Positions 18,024 to 47,670 are shown, numbered from the stretch's first letter. The stretch: 64,000 nucleotides of DNA from Macrostomum lignano (GCA_002269645.1 NIVC01002066.1:143687-207686); one strand, 5' to 3'. The notes: generated from the sequence alone by a model not told the origin. A program made the numbers and translations.

Positions 18024-19323
18024 ATGCAAACCTTTACGTTGGTCTACGGCATCATCGCTTTGCTTCTAGCCACCTCACAGCAGGTGGACTGCGTGTTCTG
18101 TCCGCCAGGATGGCTGTTGACAGCCTCGCGCGGACTGTGCATCGGGACTTCGTCGTTCCAAGCCACTGAAGGCATTCCGGCAGCTGCGGCCGCTGATTTC
18201 TGCGGCAGAGCCGTCAGGCAGGCTGGTCTGGCGAGCACAGCAGCCGACCCGGATGTGCTTCGGTTGGGGCAGAAGCTGGCGAAGGGACGGCGACTGTGGG
18301 TTTCCGGCTGTTCGAAGGCTTCAATCAAACGGAATGTGTAAGTCTGCTGTCTGTCTGGTGGTGTTGTAGATAATAGTCTCGAGCTGCCCGGGCTCGATTC
18401 CAAGTGCAGTCATTAATTTGGGGCTAAATTGGAATCTCGACTTGAGTCTGCTCGTGCATGAAATTAATGGCCTTTCTTTAGCGCCAACCATCAAGGCACA
18501 GTGAAGTATATACATGTCTAACGATAATATATTCAGGGTCCCTGTACACCTCTGTGAAAGTGTGCCTGTTTTTATGACTGATAGTTTTGTGTGCTTGCTC
18601 AGGGGAGTCGTTGGAATGAGCAGTAATGAATCTCGCCAGTTGTGTGACAATGTCTGTTAAAGGGTGCACACAGCCCCTGTCTCTAGCTAAAAAATCTGCT
18701 GTCTATGGCTGGGTCTCGCAGTTGAGGCTCATAAGCTTTGGTCGAAAATGGGCCGGGAGCAAATGGGCCGACCCACAAGGGTTAATTTCTGCATACTTTT
18801 GCCTGAGTGTAGTGCCTGCATGTGATTTTGACGAACCTTAATTGCCTTTTGGCAGTGCCGAAAGGAATCAGAGACTCGATTAAAAATAACACTGAACAAC
18901 AGACGAATAGATAAACCGTATAACTTTTCTGAATGTTGCAGCGAAAGTCGCCAGTGCTGCGCAGTCAATCCTGATGATGGAAGCATCATGCGGACAGCTT
19001 GTTCAGAGCTGCTCCTTCCTTTGTGCTCGGCGTCACCCTTGCTGAGTCGGCAGAAGCGCTTCTACTACGATTTCAGCTACACCAACGACTACTCAATATA
19101 CTCTACAACAGTGCTTCCATTCACAAGCAGTCCTGATGCAGCAACGATTGTCATTGTGATTTTTGTCACTATATTACCGATAGTCCTTTTTGCGCTGCTT
19201 GTCTGGTGCTGCATGCGCTGCTGCTGCAAGAGTAAGACGGTTGTAAAGCCAGCGCCACCGCCAGAGCCTGAACCTGAAGTTGAGGTGATCGGCATTGTGA
19301 CTGTTCACACTGTGCGATATTAA
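18024..19323 (+). CDS. C-type-lectin-like / furin site / single-pass TM protein, copy A (231 aa)
   Basis: Exons 18024-18337 and 18942-19323 (phase 2, GTAAGT...TTGCAG). Signal peptide; CPPGW...C...FC...LAS...LWVSG...C...C...LC; SRQKR; TM IVIVIFVTILPIVLFALLVW; CCMRCCC. Confidence 0.8.
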
Positions 19324-20223
19324 CGACTGCTGGCTGCTGTACATGTACGAGTCGTACGTACTTCTATTTTTCGGTATACACTAGTATTCAGTGGATGTCT
19401 TTGCAACAAATAATCTTTAGCGACACTGCAATTGCGAGCTTAAAGGACTTAATTAATCACATTGCGCGTTTTTTTCTATGTAAGATACGTTCAAGAATAT
19501 TAGATTCATGTAAACATCTTTAATCAGCGTTACTTTCATACTCTAACAAGTTTTATTCAAATTTACTTTGTTACAGCTTTTTGAAGGAACAAATGCTTTT
19601 TTAACAAAAATTCCAACAATATACAGCTCGTACAAGGTAAACGTGTTGTTTAGTATTTTAGTTCGATATTAGTTACTCATGTTCACGAGTAGAGCAACAG
19701 ACATGCATTTTGCAAGCATGCAGGCGATTAAATTTAAAATATACTCGTATTATTATTAATTTTAACGAATGCACTTCTACTCTGTTTTCCAAAGAAATAT
19801 TTGTAAGCATGCACATTATAGCTCGCACTAAAAAGACATAAAGGTTGCAAATGCGGGAGAAAAGTGTTTTAATTTTTTAGCTCGTATTGTACGTAGCAAG
19901 TGGTCTATTCATGGCATGCGCTGCTTCATTTGAATGCTCTCTAAGCTGACTCAAAGCTCCCATTTCATTCAATGAGCACGACAACCGTCGATTCAATTTT
20001 TGGCCATCCTGCAAGTATCACGGATATATGATGCGGATTTCATTCGCTTATAAAGTTTGCTTTGTCTGTGAGCACGAAGAAAATCAATTCAATTTTCGGG
20101 GATCCTGCAAGTTTTCACGGATTTAAGATGCGGATTTCACAAGCTTATAAAGTCTACTTTGTTTTCATGAAAGCCAACAAAAAACACGTCTCGCTCGAGT
20201 CTCACTGCTAAAGCTAGTAGACG

Positions 20224-20934
20224 ATGCAAACCTTTACGCTACTCTTTAGCATCAGCGCTCTGCTTCTAGCCACCTCACAGCAGGTGGACTGCGTGTTCTG
20301 TCCGTCTGGATGGCTGTTGATAGCCTCGCGCGGACTGTGCATCGGGACTCCGTCGTTCCAAGCCACTGAAGGCATTCCGGCAGCTGCGGCCGCTGATTCC
20401 TGAGGCAGAGCCGTCAGGCAGGCTGGTCTGGCGAGCTCAGCAGCCGACCCGGATGTGCTTCAGTTGGGGCAGAAGCTAGCGAAGGGACGGCGACTGTGGG
20501 TTTCCGGCTGTTCGAATGCTTTGATCGAATGGAATGAGTAAGGCTGCTCTGCAGTATAATGCTGTTATTGAGAGTTCAGCATTTAGCACGACTGCAGACT
20601 CTCACGACTATCAGGGGTTTGATTCCCGTGTGAGCGCTAGCTGGCTCATGTTGCATGCAGAGAAAGTCGTCAGTGCTGTGCAGTCAATCCCGCTGATGGA
20701 AACATCGTGCCAACAGCTTGTTCAGAGATGCTTCTTCCTTTGTGCTTCGCCCCTCCCTTGCTAAGTCGGCAGAAGCGCCAACAGTCAGGCAGTTCTTTTG
20801 TAGGAACGGTTATCGGTGGGATTTTCGGAGTTATTGCAACGATAATTGTTTTTGCACTTCTGATCTGGTGCTGCTGCAAAGTCTGCACAAGTAATATCGT
20901 TATTCCAGAGCCTCAGCCTGACATTGAGGACTAA
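20224..20934 (+). pseudogene. Lectin-TM copy B, nonsense at codon 60
   Basis: Exons 20224-20537 and 20661-20934. TGA at 20401-20403 replaces the conserved Cys (TGC) of ADFCGR. The intron is shortened to 123 bp. Confidence 0.85.
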
Positions 20935-25940: not shown

Positions 25941-25971
25941 TGCTCACTCTAGTGAGTCCTCCCATAGGCCA

Positions 25972-26469
25972 AGAATCCGCCCCCGGAATCCGCCCCCGGA
26001 ATCCGCCCCCGGAATCCGCCCCCGGAATCCGCCCCCGGAATCCGCCCCCGGAATCCGCCCCGGAATCCGCCCCCGGAATCCGCCCCCGGAATCCGCCCCC
26101 GGAATCCGCCCCCGGAATCCGCCCCCGGAATCCGCCCCCGGAATCCGCCCCGGAATCCGCCCCCGGAATCCGCCCCCGGAATCCGCCCCCGGAATCCGCC
26201 CCCGGAATCCGCCCCCGGAATCCGCCCCCGGAATCCGCCCCGGAATCCGCCCCCGGAATCCGCCCCCGGAATCCGCCCCCGGAATCCGCCCCGGAATCCG
26301 CCCCCGGAATCCGCCCCCGGAATCCGCCCCGGAATCCGCCCCCGGAATCCGCCCCCGGAATCCGCCCCCGGAATCCGCCCCCGGAATCCGCCCCCGGAAT
26401 CCGCCCCGGAATCCGCCCCCGGAATCCGCCCCCGGAATCCGCCCCCGGAATCCGCCCCCGGAATCCGCC
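25972..26469. repeat. 13-bp minisatellite (GGAATCCGCCCCC)n with 12-bp variants
   Basis: Read directly, about 39 units. Confidence 0.95.
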
Positions 26470-27297: not shown

Positions 27298-28244
27298 ATG
27301 CAAACTTTTACGTTGGTCTTCGCCATCAGCGCTTTGCTTCTAGCCGCCTCACATCAGGTGGACTGCGTGTTCTGTCCGCCAGGATGGCTGTTGACAGCCT
27401 CGCGCGGACTGTGCATCGGGACTCCGTCATTCCAAGCCGCTGCAGGCATCCGGGCAGCTGCGGCCGCTGATTTCTGCGGCAGAGCCGTCAGGCAGGCTGG
27501 TCTGGCGAGCACAGCAGCCGACCCGGATGTGCTTCGGTTGGGGCAGAAACTGGCGAAGGGACGGCGACTGTGGGTTTCCGGCTGTTCGAAGGCTTCGATC
27601 GAACGGAATGAGTAAGGCTGCTGTCTAGTGCTGTTTTTCGTTGATTCAGTATTTAGCACGGGCCAGCCACCCCAGGCACAGCGGGTCAGGGTCCCGCTGA
27701 CGAAAGCTCCCCTAGAAACTGGATTAAGATTGCTATATAGTTTATCCATCGGTTTCTACAGGAAGCTTCGACAATAAACTCTCAAGACAGTGAACCTTAT
27801 TTACATGTACCTTTATTGATCAAATATACGAATCTAAACCGTACAACTTCTCCACAATGTCGCAACTGTTGCAGTGAAAGTCGTCAGTGCTGTGCAGTCA
27901 ATCCCGTTGATAGAAAAATCACGCCAACAGCTTGTTCGGAGCTGCTCCCTCCTCTGTGCTCCGCGCCTCCCTTGCTGAGTCGGCAGAAGCGGCAATACTC
28001 TTACTACTACTACTACTTATACTCCACAACAGTGCCTTCATCATACTACTCAAGCAGTTCTTATGTAGGAACGGTTCTAGGTGTGATTTTTGGAGTTATA
28101 GTACCGATAGTGATTGTTGTGCTTGTGATCTGGTGCTGCTGCAATTGCTGCAAAAGCAAGACGGTTGTCGTAAATCCAGTGCCTCAGCCCCAGCCTATGG
28201 GTATGGGGGTGAACATTGTGAATGTTCAGAATATGCAGCATTGA
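27298..28244 (+). CDS. Lectin-TM copy C (227 aa)
   Basis: Exons 27298-27611 and 27875-28244. RQKR-QYSYYYYYLYSTTVPSSYYSSSSY, TM, WCCCNCCK, tail ending NMQH. Confidence 0.85.
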
Positions 28245-29632
28245 GGACTGCTATAGCTACACTCAAACTGTATATGGATGTCTCTACAACAAAAAACATT
28301 TAGCACCACTGCAAAGTGAGAGTACCTAGCTACTGTGCATGTAACTACCGTATTTCATTTTATTCCATATACATGTACGTCATATAGATTTGGTAAATAT
28401 ATATCATGCTTTAGTTCAAACTCTGTAACGAATTTCATAAAAAATTCTTATATTACAGTTTTTAAAAGTTGCAACTAGTAAACTGCAACGTGTCTGTTTT
28501 TTAAATAACTGTATTTTAGTGCTTAAACAACTTTATTTTGCGTTAGTTCGCTATTTTTACTCATGTTTTAGAGCAAAAAATAGATTGCATACCGCATTAT
28601 CATGAAATAAAAAAATAAACGCTTCTATTTTGTCACCAAGGAAAAATTGGTAAAATTTCACACTCGATACAGTGTAAATGTTTTGAAGCCATTTCCCGGT
28701 AAGTGAATGTAGCGGTTGATCGGTGAAAGTATGAAGTGCGCAATTTTGGCGTTCACAAAACAAAGTTCTGTGCTCTGTAGAACTTTTAAAACTTACTGCT
28801 ATAAATGTGAAATAATGGACTTTACATACTACTTTACTATAATGACAGTAGCGCAAGCTCCGCGATTAGGCCGCAATCAGGCCCCGCGCAACCGTAAGGC
28901 AAAAAAGAAGCCTACATGCAAAGATTAACCTTAGGGGCGCGCCCCGCCCCCACCATGCAGTAGTCAACAGGAATTCGCTGAGGAGACACCGGCGGCCGGT
29001 ATCTCGAAAGAAAGTGCGAAGCTCACGGCCGTTGTCCGGGTTGGTTAGCTCGTCCATCCGCTGGTTAATGTGGCCGAGGTGTTTTGAGCCGTGCCTTTTT
29101 GAATCAAGGACAGAAGGTCCGCGGTCTTCTCTCTCCTATGCCACAGGGAAAGACAGGTGGGAGAGGGATCAAACCGCTTTGCAACAAAATATCTTTGGAA
29201 GGAAGATGGCAATTAAGACCCAATGACCACTAGAAGTTACTGGTAACTTCTAAATGTATATATGTATAGTGTTTCTTGTTAGGACCTTGCAAATCTGCCT
29301 GAGATCGGTTCTGTTACATGTATGTGAGAACAACAGATATTCAGAGACTTTCCTGTTCAGGTATGGGCATCGCAGAGCGGGTCTGCATGCTTGGCCTTAG
29401 CTGTATTCGGTGCAACACTGGCCTGTTCCACTGGAGCTGCATGGTGTTGCTGGTGGTGCCACCTGTAGCTGCTGATATGCGGTTGTTTGCAACCTAGGCA
29501 TGGGTAGCCTCATCAGACTCATGGTTGACTCAAATGGTTGACTCAAAAAGCCGCATATGGGTTGCTGCCCGGCAGCTCCTTGGCGAGAGAATCCGCGAGA
29601 TCGCTGTCCAAGGATATATTACTACTGTGACG

Positions 29633-29990
29633 TCATGGTGTCCTAATCCCGTTAAGGACTGAAAGAGATTCGTACACACTCAATACATCGCATGGTAGCA
29701 TTGAGATACAGTTGCAGTGGAAATCTTCGTTGGTTAAGACCTTGATAGCGGCTTGAATATCAGTGTAAAAATGAATATTGAAATTCATTATGTTCGCCCA
29801 GCTGGAAAGCAGGTGCTGGAGCACACTGCTTAATGGCGCGAATTTCGGCTTGGAAAACCGGGGGTGTTAATTCTTACCGAGTTTCAGAATTTCTTGAAAG
29901 AGCATCATGCCCTCGTGGAATATGACGATACCCGTTCCAGCGTTGCCGTAGCACCAACAGCCGTCGTCAGTTTGAAGCAGTGGATACCCT
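29633..29990 (-). pseudogene. RNase H fragment of a non-LTR retrotransposon (I/R1/LOA-like)
   Basis: Frameshifted motifs TDDG...AGTGIVI, VFQAEIRAI and IHFYTDIQAAIKVL match non-LTR RNase H (YTDG...FQAE...YSDS.AA). Confidence 0.7.
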
Positions 29991-30851
29991 GGCTGTGCTA
30001 ATTCACACCAAAGAAAGGGAGGAAAGAAAGAAAGAAAGCAATAAAGAGAACGAAGGAAGAAAGAAAGGAATGCGAAAGGGGCAATGTTTTGTTTTAACCA
30101 ATCACACCCCAACAGCGAAAGAGACGAACAGCAGGCAGGCAAAGGCTTATGGCCCGAAGCAGCGCGAGAGGTGGGGAAAGCGACCCCGTAGTAACGATAA
30201 GTTTATTTTGCAAGCAAACGAGATTAAAAGAAAAAGAATGTGCTTAAAAAAAATTTGAGCTGCAAAGCCAAAGCGAGCGACGGGGCACAGAGGGCGGCGT
30301 GCAAATAAATAAGCGGGTGAGCAAACCCCCCCCCACCCCACGGGGGGTAGAGAGGACGGAGCACAAAGGCGGCACAATGCACAGCGCGAGGGGTGGATGG
30401 CTAACACCCATTTCACTCCAGGCTCACAAAAGAGCCTAAGAGAAATGGAGGCATTAACCAATCACACCCCAACAGCGAAAGAGACGAACAGCAGGCAGGC
30501 AAAGGCTTATGGCCCGAAGCAGCGCGAGAGGTGGGGAAAGCGACTCCAACCCCGAAAAAAGGAGGAGAAAAGGAGAGAACAGGAAGATAAAAACAAGGAG
30601 GCAGCAAAAGTAAGCGAAGCCAGGCCACGAACGCCAAGGTAAAACGCCAAAGGGTCAATAAAACGAGCGAGTAAGCAGTCAAGAGGCCAGGCAGGCAGCG
30701 ACCTGCCGAGCTGCTGCCCGACGGCGGGCAAACGACGCCTCATCAGAGAAATACCGAAAGACGCAGTCTGAACGCCAGTCGCCCATGCAACGGATGTCGG
30801 CGATTGAGAGGCCTGACTGAAAGGCAGCGCTGGCCCCGCCTCTACGCAGAC

Positions 30852-31887
30852 CACAGAACATAGACAGAATGCCCGATCGGCTGTCGCGGGATGTTTAGAA
30901 ATTAATATGCAAACAAACTACTTTTGTGGTGAAGCGGAGCAGTAGTTATGAAAATTCGATATGCATATATATATATTTATAATATATGTAGACTCTGCGT
31001 ATGATTCTATAAACTTATATATTGCTTCAGAATTTAAAATTAACAGGTTTGGCAGTGCCCAAATAGGAATAAAACCGTAGACGTTGTCCCCAATCATTTA
31101 TTTGAAACAAAAAACATATTTGAAACATTTTCCATCAAAACACTGCACATCGTCCTCAGTGCGACCTTCTCTCGGCCTTCTCTCCTTCGCAAGTGGAGAA
31201 ACTCTTACTCTCGGACGCGAGCGTCGGTAAGGTTCTGCTATTTCTTTGTACAGCTGGAGCATCGGGTAAGCCGTGGGCATCAGTCTGACCCCAGGCTCAT
31301 GTCTCTGGTCAGGACACACGTACATGCTGTCGGGAAAATGGTGGCTGCACACGACAGCGTTCTTCCACCTCGCTTCGTTTTTCTTGCCCAAGAGGTCTGC
31401 TCGGAAGATGCGCCGAGCCCAATCTTCACACCTACAGTAGTTAGGTTTCAGTGAATGACTATGGGGCAATAGCAGGAAAGTCACGCATGTACATGAACAT
31501 ACCTTTCTCGGTTTGCTGGGAATCGATGAAATCTCGTTTGTGCAGGACATTTGTTTGCGTAATTCTGGCAGCCATAAGCAGCGCATTGCCTTCTTGATGC
31601 TGTCATGTTACAGTTGTCTCTGTTTAATGCCTTCGTTGCTACCAATCACTGCCTTATTCATGTCAGTAGCAGCAGCCGCTGCCACAGAATATACTGTATA
31701 TTCTGTGGCAGCGGCTGCTGCTACTCGCAGTCTCAGTCGTCTATGGCAGAACCTTTCCAAGCCGCATACGCGTAAGTATAAGTGGCTACTATCTTTCTTC
31801 ACCACAAAAGTAGCTAAATATGCAAATACTTTTTGTAACAGATTTTTCTGCGAGAGGGCTGATCGGCCATTCTGTCTATATTCTGTG
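30852..31887 (-). mobile_element. Non-autonomous P-superfamily element (1036 bp)
   Basis: 27-bp TIRs CACAGAACATAGACAGAATGCCCGATC / GATCGGCCATTCTGTCTATATTCTGTG (2 mismatches); 8-bp TSD ACGCAGAC at 30844-30851 and 31888-31895; THAP gene inside. Confidence 0.85.
31098..31606 (-). CDS. THAP zinc-finger-only protein (145 aa, 2 exons)
   Basis: Exon 31606-31503 (MTASRRQCAAYGCQN...FHRFPANRE), 71-bp intron GTATGT...TGTAG, exon 31431-31098 (CEDWARRI...VCSHHF...LMPTAYP). Complete C2CH/THAP signature; no transposase catalytic domain. Confidence 0.8.
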
Positions 31888-32654
31888 ACGCAGACTGTGA
31901 CCCGAGAAGCCGCACTCGCCAAAGCCGCACATAGACATGCCCCGCTTTAGGAGCCGGATGAACATAACGGCAGACAAGAGAGTCCGGCCGCGGCTGCCTA
32001 GGACAGAAAACAGGGGCTGCTGCGGTCCGTAGATTTGATTCTCGCGCAGATGAGTTGCTAGTGCGGAAGCGGGACAGATAAGCAGGCATTCAGAGGCCTG
32101 CGGCAGAAATAATTCCAGTTGCCGCTCCTTGAATTGGTTTGTCTTTGACCTGTTGAGCACCAGCCGCAGACCACCGGGGCACGCTGATAGGCAGCTCCGG
32201 GGAAGAGCGTCCGCAGCGGTGGATGGTAAGAGCTCGCCGAGCCTAAGGACTCCCCACCAGGCCACCAGCAATGCTGCCTGGAAGGCGGCCAGCAGACGGG
32301 GCGGCAGCGAATGACGTAGCTCGGTGGAGCTGCAAAGCAGGCGGAGGTGGCTGGGCTTCAGCGGCGTCGCACGCCGAGGCTGCCGGCTCAGAAGACGCCG
32401 AGCCCCGCGACACACGAGAGCCAGGCGAGCGCTGCCCTTGGTCGGGTCTGGTGACGCGGAAGCCCTATGTAGGTAAGACACCGCGCTGAGGCTTGACTGC
32501 ACACTGGAGTAGGACGCCGGTCCACGTTGTAACAGGAACGAGACAAATTGGCAGACATCAGACTCGGAGGCGGCGGTCGCGGGAACTCGACGCTGCCGGC
32601 AGAATTCGTTCCAGACTTGTAAGCGGCTCGCATAGGACTTCCTGGAACTAGGCG

Positions 32655-34322: not shown

Positions 34323-34392
34323 TGAGCAGATGGAGGCAAGATAAAAGGTGACGGCGAACGGGGGTTAAAAGCAGGGCGGCTATAAAAAAGAT

Positions 34393-35451
34393 CTAGTTTT
34401 TTGCTTCCTCCACAGCGTCGCCGCCGACGCTGGCCGGACGGTGCTGGTGTGCGGGGTGCAGCCGGCCGCAGTCGCGCAGCTTGCAGACGTGACGGTATCT
34501 ACAGGAGGACCGCTGGCAGCCGGCAGGGGAGTTGTAGCTTAGGCAGATGGGAGCTTGCGACTGGTTGGATGCTGGTCTGCTTAGGGTGACTTTTAAGTTT
34601 CTTGGTGCGTTAAGGTGTCGGTGGTACAGCTGTGGAGGCTCGCAGCCCCATCGATGCGAATCCGAGTCGGCGATCAACTTTCTGTAATCCTCATCGAATT
34701 CCCACACGACACTTGGGCTGTAGTTAGCGTCTAAGAGCTCGCCGATCTTCTGTGAGTACTCCAGATAGCCTTTTAGTTCGTCAACATTGACAGATCTATC
34801 CTCATTAATGTGAATCAGCGACCCATCATCAACTAGTCGAAGCAAAATCTTAGAGTTCCCTGCAATCCACTGGCCGACAGAGATTTTCCCCAAGCTGGGT
34901 GGCTGCTTCTTAAAGACCAGGTTCCCGTTCTCCATGCAGGCTGTGAGGCTCTCATTAGGTTGATTTGAACTGGGCTTGACAAAATCGCGAATCAGATAAG
35001 CCCTGCTAGGCTTTTTGTCACACTGGCTTCTGCCGGGATCTGTAAGAGCGCCGCCTAACAAAAACGCCTCATGCAAGCCAGCATTTTCTCCCCGCTCACC
35101 TTGTTGTGGAGGTTCCTGAGACCGGTGGTTCTGCGACTGATTGAGCTCGCTTTGCAGTTGTGCGCGGCGCCGAGTCAGAGCTTCAATCTCCAGCTGCTCG
35201 ACCTCCTTCCTCAGAGCCGCCAGGTCGCTCGCCGCGCTCCCTGAAGCTCCGTGTCCACCCGTCGAATGTCCAGCGTCGATGGTGTCTGAGTTGAGGCTTG
35301 CGTCGTGACTTTTTGCTGCAGCTGGATACTCAGACATAGCACGCAGGTGTCTGTGTAGACGCTCATAGAGTTGTTGTTTACGACCAGCTTGTGAGAGGCC
35401 TCGCTGAGCTAGCTCTTGTTTGAGCTGTTTAGTTGTGCGTGCACTTTCCAT
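34393..35451 (-). CDS. Ngaro gag-like ORF1 with N-terminal SAP motif and C-terminal Cys/His finger (352 aa)
   Basis: ATG at 35451 just inside repeat A1. TTKQLKQELAQRGLSQAGRKQQLYERL fits the SAP consensus; CLSYNSPAGCQRSSCRYRHVCKLRDCGRLHPAHQH at the C-terminus. Confidence 0.8.
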   Translation of the reverse strand: MESARTTKQLKQELAQRGLSQAGRKQQLYERLHRHLRAMSEYPAAAKSHDASLNSDTIDAGHSTGGHGASGSAASDLAALRKEVEQLEIEALTRRRAQLQSELNQSQNHRSQEPPQQGERGENAGLHEAFLLGGALTDPGRSQCDKKPSRAYLIRDFVKPSSNQPNESLTACMENGNLVFKKQPPSLGKISVGQWIAGNSKILLRLVDDGSLIHINEDRSVNVDELKGYLEYSQKIGELLDANYSPSVVWEFDEDYRKLIADSDSHRWGCEPPQLYHRHLNAPRNLKVTLSRPASNQSQAPICLSYNSPAGCQRSSCRYRHVCKLRDCGRLHPAHQHRPASVGGDAVEEAKN

Positions 35452-36103
35452 AATGGTAAAATTTTGAGCTGCAAAGCCAAAGCGAGCGACGGGGCACAGA
35501 GGGCGGCGTGCAAATAAATAAGCGGGTGAGCAAACCCCCCACCCCACGGGGGGTAGAGAGGACGGAGCACAAAGGCGGCACAATGCACAGCGCGAGGGGT
35601 GGATGGCTAACACCCATTTCACTCCAGGCTCACAAAAGAGCCTAAGAGAAATGGAGGCATTCATAGTTAAACAACAGACCAGATTACAGAATATTACCAG
35701 ATGTGGACCAGATTGTGGACCAGATTGACATAAACCAAAGCAATTTAAAAGAATAATCGTAAAAATAAAATCACATATCATACCAGTAAAAAGGTTTTAA
35801 TTAATCAGCCTCTATCTCAAAAAGCCGACTGCCTTCTTATTAACTGGGTAACTGCAAGAGATTACACAAAACCAGACATAAAACTCAAGAGGTCTCAAAT
35901 TCAAGAATGTAACAATCTCGGTTTTTACCTAAAAACCTAGTTTAAACAATAATAAGAAACATTTTGAAGGGTTTGTAAAAAATATTCATTAGAAGTGTAA
36001 ATTACCTTTAATATTGTTTTAAAGTTTATTCATCTTTATTTAATTGTTATCATTACTTAGTAGGTTAGCTACTTTTTGAATCATTTTTCATGACACTTTA
36101 TGT

Positions 36104-36380
36104 GGAGGGCTGGACTGCTTTACTACCGTGTAGGTGTTGCGGTCCGAAACTGATATTGAAAAAAAATTTGCCTCAACTCATTAGTAAAAATACTTCCATA
36201 ATGACCACCGATAATAAGCAGTGAAAGTCACAAAATTACCTGAGTAGCTCAGAGAGAACACAAGAGTTGCGGTACATGCCGCCACATTTCTGCATCGGGT
36301 TTCCGTAGCAGGCCATGCTGCAGTTGCCTTCACCCACCAAGCCATGGGATCCGTACGAGTTGCTGTAGAGTATTCTGCCT
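36104..36380 (-). pseudogene. WSC+PAN internal fragment (end of WSC, intron, start of PAN exon)
   Basis: NSYGSHGLVGEGNCSMACYGNPMQKCGGMYRNSCVLSELL-like segment, CAG|GTAATT donor, and an exon-2 start matching copy 4. Confidence 0.75.
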
Positions 36381-36479
36381 CCCTCATAAATTTGTAAAAA
36401 TGGTTAACATACTACTTATAAATTTTTATTCAGTAGTATACTAAGTAGCATGTATAAAGATGTGCGCTGAACTATACAT

Positions 36480-37010
36480 ATATTTTAATCAACCAATCAA
36501 AAGAAAGAAAAGTCGGTCATGCTATTTTTGGCAACCGACCAATCACGCGTGACCTACAATTGTCAAGTTAAACTCCATCTGCGATTCATCATTGGTCACG
36601 TACGGCCTACGTTTGTCAGTTCAAACCCCACCTGCGATTCATCATTTGGCTTGCACCCGGTTTGCACCCGGATGAACCAATCAAAGTCTACCAGCTACAA
36701 TAACCAATCATGCGCTTTTACAGTAGACTAGTTGCGCAACTTTCTACCCTGTCATGCTTGACAGCCACCGAATCGTGACCCTTTGACATTTGCGAAGACA
36801 GTGATGAATGACCTCGAGAGAGGTCCGAACGCTTATAAATACAAGTGGTCCGGAGCGGACCCGGAGCCAACAATTTCAATGAAAAGTTCAATGAAATTGA
36901 AAAGTCAATGAATGAGTCGACGAAGCATCAATATTTACTTATGCACAGGACTTAAAGTTTGCGAGTTACATTTAAAGGTAGAGGTAAGGGTAAATACCTG
37001 CCGTTCTTCC
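36480..37010 (+). promoter_or_regulatory. Orphan Pol II promoter (CCAAT cluster, TATA, GTAAGG donor), probably LTR-derived
   Basis: At least four CCAATCA boxes at 36490-36710 and TATAAAT at 36834. A 38-bp core is shared with 41140-41177. Confidence 0.5.
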
Positions 37011-37039
37011 AACTAAGAATCTACTTCTGACTAGTTAGA

Positions 37040-37652
37040 GCGGATCCAGTTTTGTGAGGCGCATCCAGTTTTGTGAGGTGGATCCAGTTTTGTGAGGTGG
37101 ATCCAGTTTGGGGGGAGGATCCAGTTTGGGGGGAGGATACAGTTTGGGGGGAGGATCCAGTTTGGGGGAGGATCCAGTTTGGGGGGAGGATACAGTTTGG
37201 GGGGAGGATCCAGTTTGGGGGGAGGATCCAGTTTGGGGGGAGGATCCAGTTTGGGGGGAGGATACAGTTTGGGGGGAGGATCCAGTTTGGGGGGAGGATC
37301 CAGTTTGGGGGGAGGATCCAGTTTGGGGGGAGGATCCAGTTTGGGGGAGGATCCAGTTTGGGGGGAGGATCCAGTTTGGGGGGAGGATCCAGATCCAGTT
37401 TAAGGGGCGGATTCAGATCCAGTTTGGGGGTAGGATTCAAATCCAATTTGGGGGGAGGATGCAGTTGGGAGGTCGGCGGATTCTGTTGGGGGGAGGATTC
37501 AGTTTGGGGGCGGATCCAGTTGGGGGGGGATACAGTTGGGGGGCGGATCCAATTTGGAGGGGGGATCCAGTTGGGGGGGGGGGGCAGATCCAATTTGGGT
37601 TGGCGGATCCAGTTTGGAGGGGGGATACAGTTTGGGGGCGGATCCAGTTTGA
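37040..37652. repeat. 19-20-bp G-rich minisatellite (GGGGGGAGGATCCAGTTT)n
   Basis: Read directly; same GGATCCAGTTT family as 661-1302, degenerating towards 37650. Confidence 0.95.
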
Positions 37653-38499
37653 GGCAGTAGCTAAACTATCTTGTATAAGAGAAGTGGCTGCTTGGCTTGA
37701 AGGATCTTATTAAGCTTCTAAGGTGTGCGGACAGTCAGAGAGAATAAAAACAGTTTTTTGGCTAGCGGTTCCCTAACTCTTTCTGGTCTCCATATCAAGT
37801 TCGCAGCACTGCCCAGGTGTAGCTCATGCATTTCCCAGTGGTTATTTGAGGGAAGTAGTGTGCAGTTGCTCCAGATACATACGCTGAAACTATGAAACCC
37901 TGTGAAAGATGCTTGGTTAAATTTTCAGGAAACCACGGGCAGGGAGCAAGTGCTTAGTAGCAACCCGGGTGCTAGTATTAGTAGTAGAGGCCTTCATCCA
38001 GCTTCTTCTCACATTTCTACATTTCTGCATGCGTCAAATGCTTCTTTCACATTTGTCTTTGAGTCGCCAAATTTACATTAGGGAGGTTAGGGCGTAACTT
38101 TGTTGAATTACAAATATTTGGCCTTTAGACCTTCGCTTAACCGCTTAGTCAGATGGAAGACCCAGGAAACTAAGCGTAAGAGATTCCATGTCAAACATTT
38201 GATGCAGTCAACCACACAGTTTCCATGCATATAGATCTCTGAAACTGACGAAACTGTGAAAAACATTGGGTATTTACTCTAAAGTTTTTAGCTTGCTCTA
38301 CTGTGGAGGAAAAACTTTGAATATTAAAGACTATCCAAATTTTTTTATCCCAATGGAACGTTAAGTGTCTGATTTTTGTTTTCACTGTCTCGAGCTCAAA
38401 GCTGTGTTGCTTTCTATCAAAGCAGGTCATTTCTGCATGTTTGCTTGAGTTCATGCTCAGCTCATCAACTGAGCCAGTCGGTCACCGCACCGCTCGAGC

Positions 38500-38975
38500 T
38501 CAGCAACGCTCGAACAGAGTCCACTCGGGTTCGATCAGGCAGTCCTCGACGGACTGAGCAGCGACGGGCCAAACGGAGGTGTACCAGATGTCACGGGAGG
38601 CCTGGACTGCTTCACTACCCGGCGTCCGTTTCCGTAGTAAGATAGTTCTTCGTAAACATTCAACTACTTTGCGTTGAAAGTTACAAAACATACCAGAGTA
38701 ACTCTGTGAGAACACGGAGTTACGGAATGAAGCTCCACCATTCTGTATTGAGTTTCTGGAGTATCTGTTCGACTTGCGGCAGTAGCTTTTCTATGACGTA
38801 GAGGATACCGCTGCACAGCTAGTTCGACATCTCTGTTCTCGCTCTGATACCACCGGCATTTTGAGGTCAACACTGAAACCGCCAATTATCTTGTTGATTC
38901 CAATGAGCCCTATCAAAGCCTCTGGGTGACTAATAATCGTTCTAGCCTGCAGGTGACGCAAGTTGGGCGAGACAT
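38500..38975 (-). pseudogene. Highly degenerate WSC+PAN copy with internal deletions
   Basis: Start context CAGTGAAATG at 38975, TTGCGTCACCTGCAGG, GAACTAGCTGTGCAGCGG, then ...SVWPVAAQSVEDCL...PEWTLFERC* and the family 3' UTR. Confidence 0.7.
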
Positions 38976-39981
38976 TTCACTGCTGGAAGAGAAGCAATTG
39001 GGATGTCTAGGGAATCTGTATCTCCATCACCATCAGAGCATGCGGATTTATAACATGCGTACACGTACATTTTGAAGCAGCTAAAACATAAATAAACTAG
39101 CTTAAAGGCTTTCAAAGCAGAAGTGTCAAATTCTCACTGATGCACCCTGATGCACACGGATCAGGAGTCCCAGACACGATATTTTTTGTTGTGTTTGTGT
39201 ATGGGTTCTATCTATGGTAGTATAAATCGCGGATTCCCATCGGCAGTCGATGAAACGCAGAGTGCGCTCCTATCTTAGATAGTTGGGTGCCTGATGCAAT
39301 AGGAGTAACATCATCTGCACCAGCTGTAAGCATTTCGACTCGTCGCAGATGATGAGGCCTGTCAGCTGGAGTCACCAACGGCGCAACGGCTGCTTGAACG
39401 AACCAGAGTGCCATTAAGGGGACTCGCTAATCGCTTTATACTACTGTGTGCCTATAAGGAGGGCTTCCGCAGGAGGTCCTTCGGGGCTGATTACCACATT
39501 TTATGTCGTGGTATCTATATCACCTTCAGACCGATGGTAGCTTTTTCGAGGTGTATATTTTTAGTGTTAGTGTGGCTACCGTAAGAAGTGGATGCAGAGA
39601 GGTAGAGTGGTTGGGATCAGAGATTGGGTATGCGATGGGGCTGGCTGAAGTAAAAATATTTTGTATATGGGGAGAAATTTTCTCCAGTAGCTCTACTGAA
39701 AGTAGCATCAATAAATAATTAACGGTCATATTTCGCAAATTAATGAAATTTGAAACCCAAAAACAAGCTCGTAGTATGTGTGTGTACGTTTATTTAGAAA
39801 ATTGAGATTAATTGGGAGAAGCTTAAAACGAATGGCAGTTGCCTTCAGTCAATAGTTACTAGTTACTTTTGACACAGCACGTTGAATTATTGAATAAATG
39901 CGAGTTTTTCCGTCAGTTCTCAACATATTTTCCTTGTGCTCTCCTAAATAATGTTCAAAGGGTCTTCAGAGGAGTTTAATC

Positions 39982-41865
39982 TGTTATTCGGACTTTATCA
40001 TTACAGTAGCGGTAAACGCGTCTTACTGTCGCAAAACACGACCGTCTGGCCACCCGAGTGACCAACTGGCTCAGTTGATGAGCTGGTTGATAAAGATCTG
40101 TAGCGAATCGCATCGCTTCTGGACTCTGTCGCTGAAACAAACATGCAACGGATGGGACAAGAAGGTTGGGCCCGGAGGATTCGTGTACAGAGCCAGCTCA
40201 GAGAGGCTGCGCCGATGTAAGCATCGCAGAACTCCGGCACATCTTTATAGAGTAGATCCAAAAAGCATTTAGGAACAAGTCGTGAAAAAAAGTTGGAGCG
40301 TCTTGGCACCAGACCGAATTGGTAGTCTACAGTCTACATTATCCTGTATACTACTCGTACTTTGAAGTTTCACAATACATTTACATGAAGATTGAGTTCT
40401 CTAAGATTTACGAGTGGTGTCCCAAAAGTAGTGTTACTTTTCACTATATCTCTCATTCTACTGATCCAAATAACATCATTTTGCACAGACTTATAGCGGC
40501 AACTCTCTTCTTCATATTAACTTTAACATCATTTTAAAAATAGACAATGGAAAAAAAGTTATGAACTAAAATGTAGCAGGACCTCGACCATAGACTTACA
40601 GTTATTGACAAGCTAGCGGAAAGTAGCAAAAGTACTTTTGATTGAATGAACTCAGACTTCTTTGTTAGGCTGCTGTGACAAAGAGATATCTATAGAAAAA
40701 CTTGGAGAAGCATATAGCTTTTAAAGCAACAGAATATTTCAAACTAGGCTTCAGCTTTATTGCTTTTTGTTCCCTCCTTCTGCTGCTGGAAAGCCATGCA
40801 AATTATGAAGAGGGCTGCGATTAAAATATTAAAAGCGTCACTTCGGTAACGGAGAAGCAGTTCTGTAGATAAAGATGGAAGAAAGGCCGGAAATCCGCGC
40901 TAGACCCAGGGCCTGCTGTCACGGAAACCTGTAGAGTGTGCTACCTCCCGTTAAAAAGGTAAAAAGAAGTTAATCGTAGAATGCTACTATAAGTAAGTAA
41001 GTACACACATGTGCACCTAAATTTTGAATGAACCACGCTACCAGGAAAAGATGTTACCAGAAAAATACGCCATGAGCCATTTTTCCCTTTTAGCGCAACA
41101 CGTGAATTGTAATGATATTATTTTGGACCGAAAAACGCCTATAAATACAAGCGGTCCGAAGCGGACCAGGAGCCAACTCTCGACGAGAGGAGAAGCTCCG
41201 AAGAGGAAGCCTTAGGAGGACTTCCTGATCAACCAAGTCAATCGAGACTCGGTCGAGTCGTAGCGGTAAGCCTTCCTTATTTGCGCCCGTTGTGTTAGAG
41301 ACGTCTCGCTCAAGTCTATTGAGACTTGAGTTTATTTGAGTCTGTTGAGACTCTTGAGTCTGTTTAGACTCCACTGGTTGCAGTCTCCAGAAGGACTGCC
41401 CCTGAGAGATCTTAGGAGACTATCAGTGGTTTCCGGAGCTATACCTAGAGTGCATATAAGCACTGCTAGAAGAAGGAGGCTTAATTCAAACCGCAGTTCG
41501 GCGCAGGGTACCCATTGTTGATACGAGGCCTCTGATTGGTCCTGACTGAAGATACCGGCCGGAGGAACTTATCGGAAGTACAAGAGGAACCAGGACCAGA
41601 GCAACTGAAGAATCAAGGCGCCTGATCTACGAGATCACAAAGAGATCCAAGCGAGATCTACTCGAAGACTACAGAAGAGATATCTCCAAGCGACGTCAAG
41701 GTAAGAAGTATCTTTAATTGATAACTGGGTTGCCTAGCAAAGTAGCTAGAAGTGATTGTTCCTTGATTATCGAAAGTCAGGTAATAAGGAACACATCAAA
41801 CCCAGCCAAAACAGGAGCCGCTGGCGCCCAGAAAATAAAGAACGATGGCCGCAACGTGGCTTACA
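39982..41865 (+). mobile_element. Probable solo LTR (1884 bp)
   Basis: TGT...ACA termini flanked by AATC on both sides (39978-39981, 41866-41869); TATAAAT at 41140, GTAAG donors at about 41267 and 41701, AATAAA at about 41834. No coding domains. The short TSD could match by chance. Confidence 0.55.
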
Positions 41866-42403
41866 AATCTAAATTTAAGTTAGGACAATAAGCTGTTTTT
41901 TTTAAATACACTTGTAGATTTCCCAGAATTTCTTTAGTCAGACAGCTACATGCATATACGACTTTTTTAAATGCACCAAACGCTTCTCTTGAGCATATCC
42001 GTTTAGGGAATAAAATCAGAGATATTCATTCCGCCTCTATCCTGCTTCTCTGCACATACGGAATCGAATTTTTTAAGTTTTACCAATGTGAAGACTTGCA
42101 GTTTTTGCTTCAAAAAGCTGAACGATTCCAAGCCGTCTAGTAAAACATCGAGCGGAAGTGTCACTATAGTTTTGAATGCATGTGGCACAAAAGAACAATG
42201 TAAAGCAACGGATGCTTGAGTCAAATATGTTGCTTTTGCAGTAGAATAATAAATAGTTCAAGGTCTTAAATTTTATTTGTCTCAAAACGAGGCATTGACG
42301 CGCTAAAACCAGGTCGTTACAATTCGCTTGAGTCCATGCTCAGCTCACCAAATGAGCCAGTCGGTCACCGCACCGCTCGAGCTCAGCCACGCACGAACAG
42401 AGT

Positions 42404-43118
42404 CTACTCGGGCCCGCTCAGGTTGCCAGGCGGGTACACGAACTCCAGCAGGTGGCAGGCGAGCTCCTGTCGGGAGAAAACGGCGGCCCGGCAGTCGGCT
42501 CTGGCGCTGCACCAGAGCAGGCAGTCCTCGACGGACTGGGCAGCGACAGGCCAGACGGAAGTGGCACCGGATGTCACGGGAGGGCTGGACGGCTTCACTA
42601 CCGTGTAGGTGTTGCGGTCCGAAACTGAAGTTGAATGAAAGTGCATAGTCTCATACTTCCATAATGACAGCCGCTACTGAGCAGTAACAGAAAATTACAA
42701 AAGTACCTGAGTAGCTCAGTGAGAACACAGAATTGCAATAGTAACCGCCACATTTTTGCTGTTGGTTTCCGGAGCAAGCATTGCTGCAGTTGCCTTCACC
42801 CACCAAGCCATGGGATCCGTACGAGTTGCCGCAGTAGCACTCTTTGCCGTGCTGCACACCGAAGTAGGCGAATTTTCCCGCCGAGCAGACGCCGCTGCAC
42901 AGCTCGTGCGACATCTCAGTGCTTAGCCATACTCGATCTTCACTAACGACATCGAATCCGCCAAGTTTTGTGAGCCCTCTGAGTCCGTTTAAGTCCCTGA
43001 GTGACCCATGGTCTTTATAGCAGCCCAGGTAGGAGAAGCGGGCGAGTCTGCAGGTGACGCAAGTCAGCAGGAGGGCAGCGCAGAGCAGAACGGGCAGAGC
43101 GGCTGCTGGACGGAACAT
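42404..43118 (-). CDS. WSC+PAN gene copy 4, C-terminally truncated by TGG>TAG (210 aa)
   Basis: Exon 43118-42707, 82-bp intron, exon 42624-42404. The premature stop removes WTLFVRG; the normal stop is at 42385-42383. Confidence 0.8.
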
Positions 43119-44913
43119 TTCGCTGCTCGGTGAGAGGCTTGGGGTGACGGTTAGTTTCTGCAACGCTCCAGGTTTTAAAAGTGTCGAAACGTGACCGATT
43201 CAGATGGGAACGCTGTTTGACCAATCGGCGGTGTTTTGGAGAAGCGTGTCGCCCTCCATTGGGCAGTTAGGGATTTCTGATTTCCTACTCATACTTGAAG
43301 GGCATGCCAATCTTTGAGAACAAAATAGACAATTGGCAGAAATACACAGGGTCTAATGACCCCAGGTCCCGCACACAATGGTGTGGTGAACTAATTGTGC
43401 AGGATGAGACTGGTTTGGCCTCTTACCTTAGCCAGTGATGCTCTCACCTGCCTCTATTCAGTGGGACGATAGTTCAAGCGACCTTGACTCCTATTTTGCA
43501 CATTGCAAGGTGCACTTAGAAAGGTACTCGTGCCGCAGGTGTTAAGGCAGGCCTCCTGTGTCTTGTCGAGCTGATTAGTTGGCGTAGGTGGTCCTGGTAA
43601 GACCATAAACTCACCTCTAAGGTCCCAGTGCAACTCCGTGCCAATGGAAGCTTTACCAGAGAGCAGTCTGGTAGCTTAAGGTTCCCCATGGGCCCTTGAA
43701 TCCGACGATATTGTTTCTTTGAGGATGCAGCTTGTGGCTCTGTGCATGTGTTCTCCAAGAAGTCACACCTTCATTGTCACTTTAATCCAATGGCTTCTAT
43801 TCAAAGGGTGAAGTGGATCACACAGTGCCTCAGGCTTCGGACACAGACTCAAACCAGATGTCGTGATGCCAGTGTTGGTCGGTCCGGCCCTTATATACAT
43901 TTAGATTATAATTTAGATATTTCCTCGTCAGGAACGGTGACCCAAACGCCGGCGGTCCGGAACTCGTGTCTGTCAATCTGTAGCAGATTAAGACATTTGA
44001 GGAACTTCGTACGAGCGTATGCTCAAGAAGCCACATTGTCTTATAGTAGTTGAAGTGCTCGCCGACTGAAATGGCCGATGCTGCTCGTTCCAGTGAGTTT
44101 TCTCAAAGGTCTCTACCTCCTTTGTCAACAAAGAGGTTTGCCGGCAGCGTAAACAATCAGCACAAAAAGTAGTTTTATGGGATTGAATAATAGTGTAGTT
44201 TGCCACAGACCGTTTTTTGGACGTATTTTGCGCATCATGCGCTCAGTGTAGTGCCTATAGTAGCATTTCTAGCATTCAAAAGCAGTGTTTAACTTTCTTT
44301 GTAAAAAATATTAAAACATTTGACCAGCAGACAAGCCTAACAAAAGTATAAATGCTTAACAGACAAGATTTTATTTGTAGGGGCCGCAACCACAAAGTGA
44401 CGTCAGTGTAAGCGATAAATTCAATTTAGACTACTGAGAAATGTATACAAATAAAAATTTGAATCGTAAAATGTCCTTTTAAACACAGTGTGGTCCGAAA
44501 AAAATTTTAGCCATAAAAGAAACGTTTGGCAATGGCTGAGCGATAAGACAAAACACTCCGTCTGACTCAGCGAGGTTTTATCCCCCCCTCCAAATTTTAG
44601 TGTGTCACAGTTGATATCAGCGTTCAAAACTCAGCCTTCAGCGGAGAACGACGTGGTTGCAGCCGCCACCAGATAAGTCCGCAGGAACCCACGACCTTCG
44701 CACAGGGCGAAGGCCTGCATATCAATCACTCAAAGAGCTGCGCAACCAAGCTGTGAGGCCCACCAAGACATCAGAGCGACGGATCAAGACTACGAGTCGC
44801 TCCCCCCGGAGCCGTAAATATACCAAAAATATTGTGGAAGTGTAGCTCGTCTAACAAATAGTAGGAAAATAAACGTCAACAAAAACATAAAAAGTAAACT
44901 TTGTTTAATTCTA

Positions 44914-45633: not shown

Positions 45634-46132
45634 TAGAATTAAACAAAGTTTACTTTTTATGTTTTTGTTGACGTTTATTTTCCTACTACCAAAAATATCG
45701 TCTATTATAGAATTAGGCAATTGCTGCAGAGTTAAGTTTTTCATTAAATCCAGTTTTAACCAGTCACCGAGCTGTTTTACTTTTTCAATTCTATCCACCT
45801 ATACTATAAACCAGGGGTCGGCAAACTCCGGCACGAGCCTCTCTATCCGGCCCTCCGGTCCGCCGAACTTCACTATGGCAATCCGGCCCTCTCAATTCTT
45901 TACGCTAAATTCTTTTTAAAGGGTAAACCCGCTTGGCGAAAACTTCCAGTCTATAGAGCACAAAACTCACAAAGCTGCAGTTTTTGTCAGACAAAAGAAC
46001 TGAAAAGAACTGTGAGCTATGGGTTTAATAACTCATGGTGGCTGTGCAGTATCTGCGAGCCTTGTCTCATATCCGTCGGTGTATCCTAACCCTAAGCTAT
46101 GGCGGAGTCTTTTGAATGCGTGCTCCATCTAT

Positions 46133-46315
46133 TCCGATGGAGAAGAGAGCCTGCAACTCTTCTCTCCGATGGAGAAGAAGGATGGATTCTCTTCTCTCTC
46201 TCTGCAACTCTCCGATGGAGAAGAGTGCCTGCAACTCTTCTCTCCGATGGAGAAGAAGGATGGATTCTCTTCTCTCTCTCTCTGCAACTCTCCGATGGAG
46301 AAGAGAGCCTGCAAC
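46133..46315. repeat. Short tandem duplication upstream of lectin copy D
   Basis: CTCCGATGGAGAAGA blocks are repeated five times in an approximately 80-bp higher-order unit; absent from the copy C upstream region. Confidence 0.7.
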
Positions 46316-46607
46316 TAAAAAGGTCGCACTAAAAGCCATAAAAAATTGCATATTCTATCGTAAGCAAACGATCCTATTCATGAACAGGCGCTGCTTCGGT
46401 TGAATGCTCTCTATAACTAAGTTGACTATTCAAAGCTCTCATTTAATTCAATGCGCACGAAAACAGTGAATTCAATTGTCTGCCAGCCAAGTTTGCGCGG
46501 ATACATAGATGCAATATCTCTCAAGCTTATAAATTAGGATTGCTTCGTGTGCCATGAAAGACACAAATTTCCACGTCTCGTTTGAGTCTCACTGCTAAAG
46601 CTAGACG

Positions 46608-47670
46608 ATGAAAACTTTTACGCTAGTCTTCGGCATCAGCGCTTTGCTTCTAGCCGCCTCACAGCAGGTGGACTGCGTATTCTGTCCGCCAGGATGGCTG
46701 TTGACAACCTCGCGCGGACTGTGCATCGGGACTCCGTCATTCCAAGCCGCTGCAGGCATCCGGGCAGCTACGGCCGCTGATTTCTGCGGCAGAGCCGTCA
46801 GGCAGGCTGGTCTGGCGAGCTCAGCAGCCGACCCGGATGTGCTTCGGTTGGGGCAGAAACTGGCGAAGGGACGGCGACTGTGGGTTTCCGGCTGTTCGAA
46901 GGCTTCGATCGAACGGAATGAGTAAGGCTGCTGTCTAGTGCTGTTTTCGGGGGTTCAGTATTTAGCACGACTGTGCAGTCTCTCACGGCTCATCAGGGGT
47001 TCGATTCCCTTGTAAGCGCTAGCTGGCCTCATAAGTGAAGGTCTCCTGCAAGAAAATGCGATCCCGGGGCTTGTCATACAATCAACGACCATAAGGGCCA
47101 ACCAACCCAGGCACAGAGCGGGTCAGGGTTGCTGCGCACAGTGCCGAAAGTCCCCCTAGACACTTGATTACTATAATATTTTGTCCATCGGTTTCTGTGG
47201 AAAGCTTCTGAGGGTCACCTTTATTGATCAATTAAACGAATCCAAACCGTATAACCTCTCCGAAATGTTGCAATTGTTGCAGTGAAAGTCGTCAGTGCTG
47301 CGCAATCAATCCCGTTGATGGAAAAATCACGCCAACAGCTTGTTCGGAGCTGCTCCCTCCTCTGTGCTCCGCGCCTCCCTTGCTAAGCCGGCAGAAGCGC
47401 CAATACTCTTACTACTACTACTACTTATACTCCGCCACAACGCGTTCACCTTACTACGACTCGTACTATTACTCAAGCGGCGCTTATGTAGGATTGGTTA
47501 TCGGTGTGATTTTGGCAATTTTAGTACCAATAGTGATTGTTGTGCTTGTGATCTGGTGCTGCTGCAAGTGCTGCAAAAGCAAGACGGTTGTCGTAAATCC
47601 AGTTCGTCAGCCTCAGCCTATGGGTATGGGAGTGAACATTGTGAATGTTCAGAATATGCAGCACCACTGA
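46608..47670 (+). CDS. Lectin-TM copy D (233 aa)
   Basis: Exons 46608-46921 and 47283-47670. RQKR-QYSYYYYYLYSATTRSPYYDSYYYSSGAY, TM, WCCCKCCK, tail ending NMQHH. Confidence 0.85.

Follow-up and report, generated by a model that had tools for sequence, protein, structure and literature searches.

Canonical C-type-lectin-like domains (CTLDs) have four conserved cysteines, of which C1 (alpha1) pairs with C4 (beta5) and C2 with C3, together with a WIGL-type core motif, and in the Link-module protein CD44 the variation of the stalk comes from alternative exons while shedding is carried out by metalloproteases and not at a dibasic site. Previous work reported that the long loop region of canonical CTLDs carries the Ca2+/carbohydrate site, that a compact class of CTLD exists in vertebrate Link modules and bacterial proteins, and that Link domains are known from vertebrates only (PMC9630629). 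Here, we analyzed a 64,000-nucleotide stretch of the genome of the free-living flatworm Macrostomum lignano (GCA_002269645.1, NIVC01002066.1:143687-207686; "the window" below means this whole stretch), which holds four tandem paralogs, A to D, three of them intact and one with a nonsense codon. They probably encode lineage-specific small type I membrane proteins that are cut between a cysteine-rich head and a variable stalk, by the mechanism set out below, and the locus is best explained as an ordinary lineage-specific family with an unclassified cysteine-rich head, a probable convertase site, a slippage-prone stalk and an instructive pattern of gene conversion. A sequence-only reading of the window had instead proposed furin-cleavable lectin receptors, in which a near-invariant lectin is shed from a hypervariable tyrosine-rich stub.

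Searches with copy A (tblastn and blastn) found exactly four copies in the window, each with two exons and all on the + strand:

17779-18023, + strand: upstream block of about 250 bp common to all four copies, 80-95% identical where alignable
18024-18337, + strand: copy A exon 1, signal peptide and first 82 residues of the ectodomain; donor GT/GTAAGT, phase 2
18942-19323, + strand: copy A exon 2, end of the ectodomain, RQKR (19048-19059), stalk FYYDFSYTNDYSIYSTTVLPFTSSPDAAT (19060-19146), then transmembrane (TM) helix, CCMRCCC, tail ending VRY and stop
20224-20537, + strand: copy B exon 1, interrupted at the conserved Cys60 position by a stop codon in frame (TGA, 20401-20403)
20661-20934, + strand: copy B exon 2, RQKR (20767-20778), stalk QQSGSSF of 7 residues (20779-20799), TM helix, CCCKVC, tail ending IED
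27298-27611, + strand: copy C exon 1
27875-28244, + strand: copy C exon 2, RQKR (27981-27992), stalk QYSYYYYYLYSTTVPSSYYSSSSY (27993-28064) with a (TAC)5 run at 28002-28016, TM helix (28065-28133), CCCNCC (28134-28151), tail ending MQH
28058, + strand: possible alternative 3' splice site in copy C, first base after an internal AG (..AGCAG/T)
46608-46921, + strand: copy D exon 1
47283-47670, + strand: copy D exon 2, RQKR (47389-47400), stalk QYSYYYYYLYSATTRSPYYDSYYYSSGAY (47401-47487), TM helix, CCCKCC, tail ending MQHH

The introns of A, B, C and D measure 604, 123, 263 and 361 nt, respectively; all are GT..AG introns of phase 2, with a consensus GTAAG donor after base 2 of codon 105 and a (T)GCAG acceptor. 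Splicing of copy D yields a protein identical, residue for residue, to NCBI PAA61144.1 (BOX15_Mlig000673g1), and the NCBI annotation of this assembly was built on RNA-seq and a mapped de novo transcriptome with StringTie, TACO, TBONE and TransDecoder (PMC5730564). The splice between exon 1 and exon 2 is therefore RNA-supported, at least for the D type, and the joining of the two exons in RNA, on which the sequence-only reading had staked its proposal, is borne out. The region is present twice more in the assembly, as expected for a line with extra large chromosomes whose assembly has 180 Mb in duplicate at an identity of at least 95% (PMC5730564); for comparison we used these two loci, NIVC01000247.1 (L001) with copy D'' (PAA87122.1) and NIVC01000085.1 (L002) with copies B', C' and D' (PAA91506.1). 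At the Cys60 codon copy B has TGA where A, C and D have TGC, and B therefore cannot make the domain. Because its counterpart B' is intact (TGC, L002 ~3063-3065), copy B is either a private null allele or a very recent pseudogene, and the earlier statement that all four copies have a near-identical domain holds for A, C and D and fails for B.

In addition, UniProt A0A1I8GL48 (P0003) joins exon 1 of C' to the internal acceptor equivalent to 28058, in frame (ERND/SYVG), which yields an isoform without the last 39 ectodomain residues, RQKR and stalk; this isoform may be splicing noise. A TATAAAG-like element (17950-17956 in copy A, with equivalents before B, C and D) lies about 70 nt 5' of each ATG, and the upstream block may have promoter function; that of copy B is partly duplicated, 19973-20065 resembling 20069-20162. 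A second long frame across exon 2 (+ strand, 27932-28303 in C and 47340-47684 in D) was considered as dual coding and taken as compositional, because (TAC)n read one base on gives runs of CTA (Leu).

The predicted protein begins with a hydrophobic signal sequence (residues 1 to ~20), followed by an indel-free ectodomain of about 120 residues (23-144), which is 87-96% identical among A, C and D, contains nine cysteines (23, 26, 39, 60, 96, 110, 111, 125 and 133) and has no N-glycosylation sequon. After RQKR come the low-complexity stalk (7-29 residues), a TM helix of about 23 residues, which is the only part with moderate AlphaFold confidence, a juxtamembrane W-CC(C)x(x)CC cluster, and a Pro-rich tail of 20-35 residues. 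The helix, the cysteine cluster and the four tail endings are as the sequence-only reading had described them, and the type I architecture as a whole (signal peptide, Cys-rich ectodomain, R-x-K-R, stalk, TM helix, Cys cluster) is supported by the sequence. When A, C and D were compared with Pfam-A by hmmscan (E<=10, the scope of all Pfam results below), only sub-threshold matches were obtained at the TM/Cys segments (TMEM52, Prominin, plant Cys-rich, Baculo_F and Mid2), and these were treated as compositional. The UniRef label "Brain protein I3" on three proteins (P0002, P0008 and P0009) was taken as a source label only, as hmmscan gave no BRI3 family at E<=10.

R-Q-K-R (residues 141-144) is the sole R-x-[KR]-R in the protein and lies 8 residues past the last ectodomain cysteine, within the Pro-rich linker S-A-P-P-L-L-S. 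The invariance of LSRQKR, noted earlier for the four window copies, extends to the four copies at the duplicated loci (8/8), and the codons of L-L-S-R-Q-K-R contain three variable nucleotide positions, all three synonymous. The residue after the motif is Gln in B, C and D and Phe in A. An R-x-[K/R]-R motif in an accessible-looking extracellular linker is what the sequence of a convertase substrate presents, and RQKR is a plausible candidate for a furin-type convertase site.

The motif order of the ectodomain (C-P-P-G-W, C-I-G, A-A-D-F-C, G-L-A-S, L-W-V-S-G, C-C-A-V, A-C, L-C) is suggestive of a compact CTLD, the fold being unverified, and candidates for the CTLD-type cysteines stand in the right order (C60, C110/111, C125 and C133), with L-W-V-S-G at 91-95. 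From W-V-S-G to the CC pair, however, there are only 14 residues, compared with about 30-40 expected in a canonical CTLD, and the long loop region is therefore absent. EPN, QPD and WND were not found in the ectodomain, so the sequence-only reading was right that they are lacking, but trivially so given this short spacing. Neither Lectin_C (PF00059) nor Xlink was matched even at E<=10, and no CTLD chain appeared in PDB searches by phmmer with a single sequence or by hmmsearch with the family profile; the sole result of the PDB sequence searches, clumping factor at E~1, was dismissed as chance. One protein with genuine Lectin_C domains, six in number (P0006), came out of an exhaustive HMMER scan of 1.84 billion representatives, but it matches residues 104-144 only and its E=7.5e-5 sums six near-identical repeats, so that the score is inflated; hhalign against these six repeats gave a 30-column local match (E=0.05). 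A home-made profile of 12 CTLDs (eleven mannose-receptor-family CTLDs from the PDB search output and one P0006 repeat) scored 1.3-4.7 bits against the flatworm domains with only the C-terminal ~30 residues aligned, a score that was reached by 2-26 of 2000 shuffles, and a search for homologs of a genuine CTLD repeat, undertaken to obtain a broad CTLD profile, yielded no candidates. Two AlphaFold2 runs (3- and 6-sequence alignments) had a mean predicted local distance difference test score (pLDDT) of 40-41, with the ectodomain below 50; a CTLD would fit the order of elements that they predict (beta, beta, alpha, alpha, beta, beta, beta), but this order is unreliable at pLDDT ~40. Foldseek with the first model against the PDB found nothing at E<=0.001, and its weak EGF-like light-chain matches to the N-terminal hairpin were not interpretable.

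Pfam, the PDB, AlphaFold2 and Foldseek, the last a check that had been suggested beforehand, thus gave the CTLD-like label no confirmation beyond the resemblance of motifs, and the head might at best, hypothetically, be a compact CTLD. As a lectin in the sugar-binding sense it is unproven and unlikely: Lectin_C and Xlink do not match, the structure models lack confidence, and the loop with the Ca2+/sugar site is missing. A kinase-domain protein (P0005) has six 2C_adapt repeats (C-x-P-G-W-x-x-S-P-E-S-G-x-C-I), which match only the N-terminal hairpin C-P-P-G-W-L-L-T-x-S-R-G-L-C-I; this hairpin motif therefore discriminates little, and the likeness might reflect distant kinship or the convergent evolution of a two-Cys beta-hairpin. 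P0004, a bacterial autotransporter, was rejected because its He_PIG repeats inflate the score.

We then compared nonsynonymous (dN) and synonymous (dS) divergence by region. Between paralogs, exon 1 had dS of 0.015-0.10 and dN/dS of 0.5-1.2, and the exon-2 part of the same domain (39 codons) had dS of 0.15-0.40 and dN/dS of 0.16-0.40, which points to purifying selection on that part; Fisher tests of synonymous changes in exon 1 against the exon-2 domain gave p=0.0014 (A-C), 0.013 (A-D) and 0.011 (A-B). The exon-2 domain codons group by paralog type (B-B' 2/118 sites, C-C' 4, D-D' 4, D-D'' 1), with 13-19 differences between types A, B and C/D and 6-10 between the closely related C and D. Exon 1 does not group by type (C-C' 11/314, C-D 9, C-D' 10, C'-D' 9, B-B' 29), and at exon-1 sites 135 and 289 (Ser97Ala) all window copies share one base and all three L002 copies another. 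In the pairs between duplicated loci (homeologs), divergence was highest in exon 1 (dS 0.06-0.16) and lowest after RQKR, where C and C' are identical over 83 codons and dS is 0.035 for D-D' and 0.018 for D-D''; exon 1 dN against dS was 0.013 against 0.089 in D-D' and 0.009 against 0.062 in D-D''. The introns are largely unalignable, and the ~250 bp 5' of the ATG are conserved along with exon 1. Within-cluster similarity, locus-fixed variants and depressed dS were thus found for exon 1 only, exon 2 being that of divergent paralogs. The locus-fixed variants, low dS and inverted pattern argue for concerted evolution of exon 1 rather than constancy at the protein level, and exon 1 with its upstream block bears the signature of concerted evolution by gene conversion. 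The near-invariant head seen in the window is therefore no evidence of unusual protein-level constraint, and the idea of a near-invariant domain beside a hypervariable stub, as a reversal of the usual receptor diversification, is not supported by the comparison, since between loci the pattern inverts and exon-1 dS is low. B and B' differ at 29/314 exon-1 sites and at 2/118 exon-2 domain sites, and similarity breaks off within the intron, the probable site of a recombination breakpoint.

The stalks differ among A-D in length and sequence, as had been said, but they are not hypervariable between duplicated loci: those of C and C' are identical, those of D and D' are 1 aa apart, and that of D'' has, relative to D, (TAC)4 in place of (TAC)5, hence one Tyr codon less, and one Ala to Thr change. 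The poly-Tyr run is a (TAC)5 microsatellite in C and D and (TAC)4 in D'', and the change in stalk length therefore comes from slippage. Tyr makes up 21-45% of the A, C and D stalks, and the stalks of A and C/D, which have a common (I/L)YSTTV core and Tyr-rich composition, are still homologous. Post-RQKR dN/dS was 0.43 for C-D (six gap codons) and about 1 for A-C, values that lend no support to positive or diversifying selection on the stalk, an idea that was dropped. B' is intact, with TGC at codon 60, nine ectodomain cysteines and RQKR, and its stalk Q-E-S-G-S-S-F has 7 residues and no Tyr, which speaks against the poly-Tyr stub being essential.

A search with spliced copy C recovered three protein clusters among 5.8 billion clustered sequences, all from M. 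lignano, and the scan of 1.84 billion representatives likewise found family members in this species only; the family, seen only there, appears to be specific to M. lignano. For expression we drew on a published re-analysis of positional RNA-seq data (PMC7336406, Tables S6 and S8) from head-only, +testis, +ovary and whole-worm fragments, in which Mlig000673.g1 (702 nt), corresponding to D, had 18, 56, 30 and 61 reads and Mlig000673.g3, corresponding to D', had 120, 168, 148 and 242 reads, respectively. Both are classed 0,0,0 "Non-Specific", without neoblast or social-environment annotation (PMC7336406). D-type transcripts are present even in the head fragment and show no specificity for the testis, ovary or tail region, the last of which contains the adhesive and prostate glands. 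This speaks against gland or gamete roles; the D-type reads occur in all four fragments, and eggshell, adhesive-gland and gamete roles were rejected. Mlig000673 and Mlig010311 had no entry in the supplementary tables of further M. lignano papers and no match in full-text literature.

In the reading that we consider probable, the protein would be made as a membrane-anchored precursor, and a furin-type convertase would probably cut RQKR in the late secretory pathway. The cut would release, or leave loosely attached, a Cys-rich module of about 13 kDa, while a short palmitoylated stub would remain in the membrane. On the same reading, gene conversion or unequal exchange, breaking off in the intron, repeatedly homogenizes exon 1 and about 250 bp upstream among neighbours, whereas exon 2 diverges by paralog type and stalk length shifts by TAC-repeat slippage.

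Several points weigh against this reading. By an estimate from amino-acid frequencies, R-x-[KR]-R occurs by chance in about 1 in 20 proteins of 230 residues (~5%), so that the argument for a convertase site depends on where the motif lies and how it is conserved, its presence alone being insufficient; cleavage, palmitoylation and topology are all drawn from motifs. Exon 1 of B and of B' is each unlike all other copies (23-31 differences), which indicates a structural rearrangement rather than simple conversion, and the low exon-1 dS could partly reflect nucleotide-level constraint, given that exon 1 has 60% GC against a background of ~43%. L001 and L002 come from a redundant assembly in which homeolog, allele and assembly duplicate are indistinguishable, and exons so nearly identical could also have been collapsed during assembly, which would look like conversion. 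Transcript-based models exist for the D type only, not for A, B or C.

Among other explanations, an uncleaved cell-surface receptor or adhesion protein is possible but clearly less probable than the cleaved precursor; RQKR would then be a basic linker, or a patch for an anionic ligand or glycosaminoglycan, and the stalk might be O-glycosylated. The architecture is that of many stalked type I receptors, the Phe after the site in copy A is unfavourable by general knowledge of furin preferences, and nine ectodomain cysteines leave one unpaired, which would allow disulfide-linked membrane dimers; but an R-x-K-R that a secretory-pathway protein presents in an exposed, Pro-rich linker is the setting classically associated with convertases, the motif was kept through synonymous change in eight copies, and the Pfam scan showed no recognisable signalling motif in the tail. 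We regard as unlikely the proposal that furin sheds a constant lectin and the family exposes paralog-specific Tyr-rich tethered peptides (for cross-linking, 3,4-dihydroxyphenylalanine (DOPA) formation or sulfation, or as a tethered ligand), with selection diversifying the stub and holding the lectin constant. Evidence for a lectin is lacking, as is the sugar-binding loop, the head is constant at the DNA level and in exon 1 only, as gene conversion predicts, the post-RQKR dN/dS (0.43 for C-D, about 1 for A-C) carries no sign of positive selection, and intact B' has a 7-residue Tyr-less stalk; moreover, the recorded isoform omits stalk and RQKR, and D-type expression is specific neither to gonads nor to tail glands. 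These observations stand against the invariant RQKR placed exactly between domain and stalk, the Tyr content of the A, C and D stalks (21-45%), the Gln that follows RQKR in B, C and D, and the retention by each paralog type of its own stalk between duplicated loci, all of which the tethered-peptide proposal accommodates.

A decaying functionless cluster of young duplicates, with low transcription and not maintained by selection, is very improbable. The full open reading frame (ORF), nine cysteines, splice sites and RQKR are kept in 7/8 copies, dN/dS is 0.16-0.40 in the exon-2 domain and 0.43 in the C-D post-RQKR part, and exon 1 dN is well below dS in D-D' and D-D'', against which can be set the nonsense codon in copy B, dN/dS of 0.5-1.2 in exon 1 and about 1 in the A-C post-RQKR part, annotated models for the D type only, and modest read counts. 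More speculatively, and with little probability, Macrostomum-specific precursors may release a reduced, loop-less CTLD-like module by a convertase, and the paralog-specific aromatic stalk left behind, Tyr-rich and led by pyroglutamate, may itself be functional: one possibility is non-covalent retention of the released head, comparable to what the hydrophobic patch does in ZP precursors, and another is oxidative cross-linking on the cell surface.

The window, which is eukaryotic DNA, contains introns as well as retroelements and minisatellites; its further features are as follows:

31876-35781, - strand: DIRS-like retroelement with three ORFs, namely SAP-domain gag-like (34393-35781), reverse transcriptase (32895-34322) and tyrosine recombinase with SAM-like N-domain (31876-32811)
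1812-2378, 5247-6038 and 42651-43163, - strand: three copies of a WSC-domain gene, signal peptide and WSC, with PAN/Apple also in 5247-6038
6448-7386, + strand: ORF with DUF3504 and phage-integrase-type catalytic region, a Crypton-like tyrosine-recombinase element or domesticated copy
10202-11615, + strand: ankyrin-repeat ORFs, before the caspase
12719-13201 and 13192-13533, + strand: caspase (Peptidase_C14), two overlapping ORFs in different frames (intron or frameshift)
665-1302, 37042-37651 and 25973-26469: GC-rich minisatellites, units of 18-20 nt (GGATCCAGTTTGGGGGGA / GGCGGATCCAGTTTGGGAGG) and 13 nt (GAATCCGCCCCCG)
56942-57930: 22/45-nt tandem array, about 22 copies of a 45-nt unit, directly upstream of the ribosomal protein S7e exon
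58004-58375: ribosomal protein S7e exon
59348-59673 and 60100-61211: further tandem arrays (37 nt and 20-81 nt, respectively)

A 3.8-kb copy of the DIRS-like element, 99.7% identical, lies at L001 1-3813, and the element was therefore recently active; the region from ~29628 to 42102 of the window, between C and D, is without counterpart in L002 (12276-14038). Upstream of D the window has a copy of the WSC gene, as has L002 upstream of B' and upstream of D', and the duplication unit therefore seems to be the WSC gene plus the Cys-rich TM gene. The GC-rich minisatellites are open in several frames and give long spurious ORFs on both strands.

The family adds an uncharacterized, taxonomically restricted group of membrane proteins in a flatworm model in which transgenesis and RNA interference are available, and several known systems resemble it in part. 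Layilin, CD302 and chondrolectin (type I, one CTLD) share with it the signal peptide, single N-terminal domain, TM helix and short tail, and, with respect to CTLD motifs, the C-P-x-G-W hairpin, C-I-G strand, helix A..F-C, G-L-A-S and second helix, followed by W-V-S-G, CC-A-V, ..A-C and ..L-C in that order; they differ in that the flatworm domain has no Lectin_C match, long loop or EPN/QPD/WND, and has nine cysteines where a canonical CTLD has four or six. CD44 and LYVE-1 (Link module, compact CTLD) are alike in the loop-less compact domain, variable Ser/Thr-rich stalk, TM helix, nearby acylated cysteine and sheddable ectodomain, but Xlink is not matched here and Link domains have been reported from vertebrates only (PMC9630629). 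Should the ectodomain turn out to be a CTLD without the loop, this class, so far known from vertebrate Link modules and bacterial proteins, would gain an invertebrate member. CYYR1 (PF10873) likewise has a Tyr-rich extracellular segment beside a single TM helix and then cysteines, a CYYR1-like protein (P0007) weakly matches residues 146-224, and TMEM52 gave a sub-threshold match to the TM and Cys region; however, PF10873 was not matched by A, C or D at E<=10, CYYR1 is without an N-terminal globular domain, and its PPxY tail motifs are absent from the flatworm proteins; this similarity, like that to TMEM52, is compositional. Membrane-anchored precursors of secreted proteins with a consensus furin site close to the membrane, such as the ZP-module proteins ZP3 and uromodulin, may be the closest analogue for how the flatworm protein works: the R-x-K/R-R site precedes the TM anchor by a few tens of residues here as there, and in those precursors cleavage frees the ectodomain while a short segment stays. 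The flatworm protein differs in having no ZP module and a released part that would be only ~120 residues long, and nothing indicates that its stalk regulates the head.

As for its evolution, a picture of a constant domain with a hypervariable neighbour can arise from exon-limited gene conversion together with a slippage-prone low-complexity stalk, without special selective logic, which is a caution against reading paralog alignments from one locus alone. The locus resembles, with nothing unusual, exon-restricted gene conversion in tandem paralogs, a form of concerted evolution known from many clustered gene families: variants shared within a cluster differ between clusters, divergence jumps at the intron and synonymous sites are homogenized, which is the standard signature of that process.

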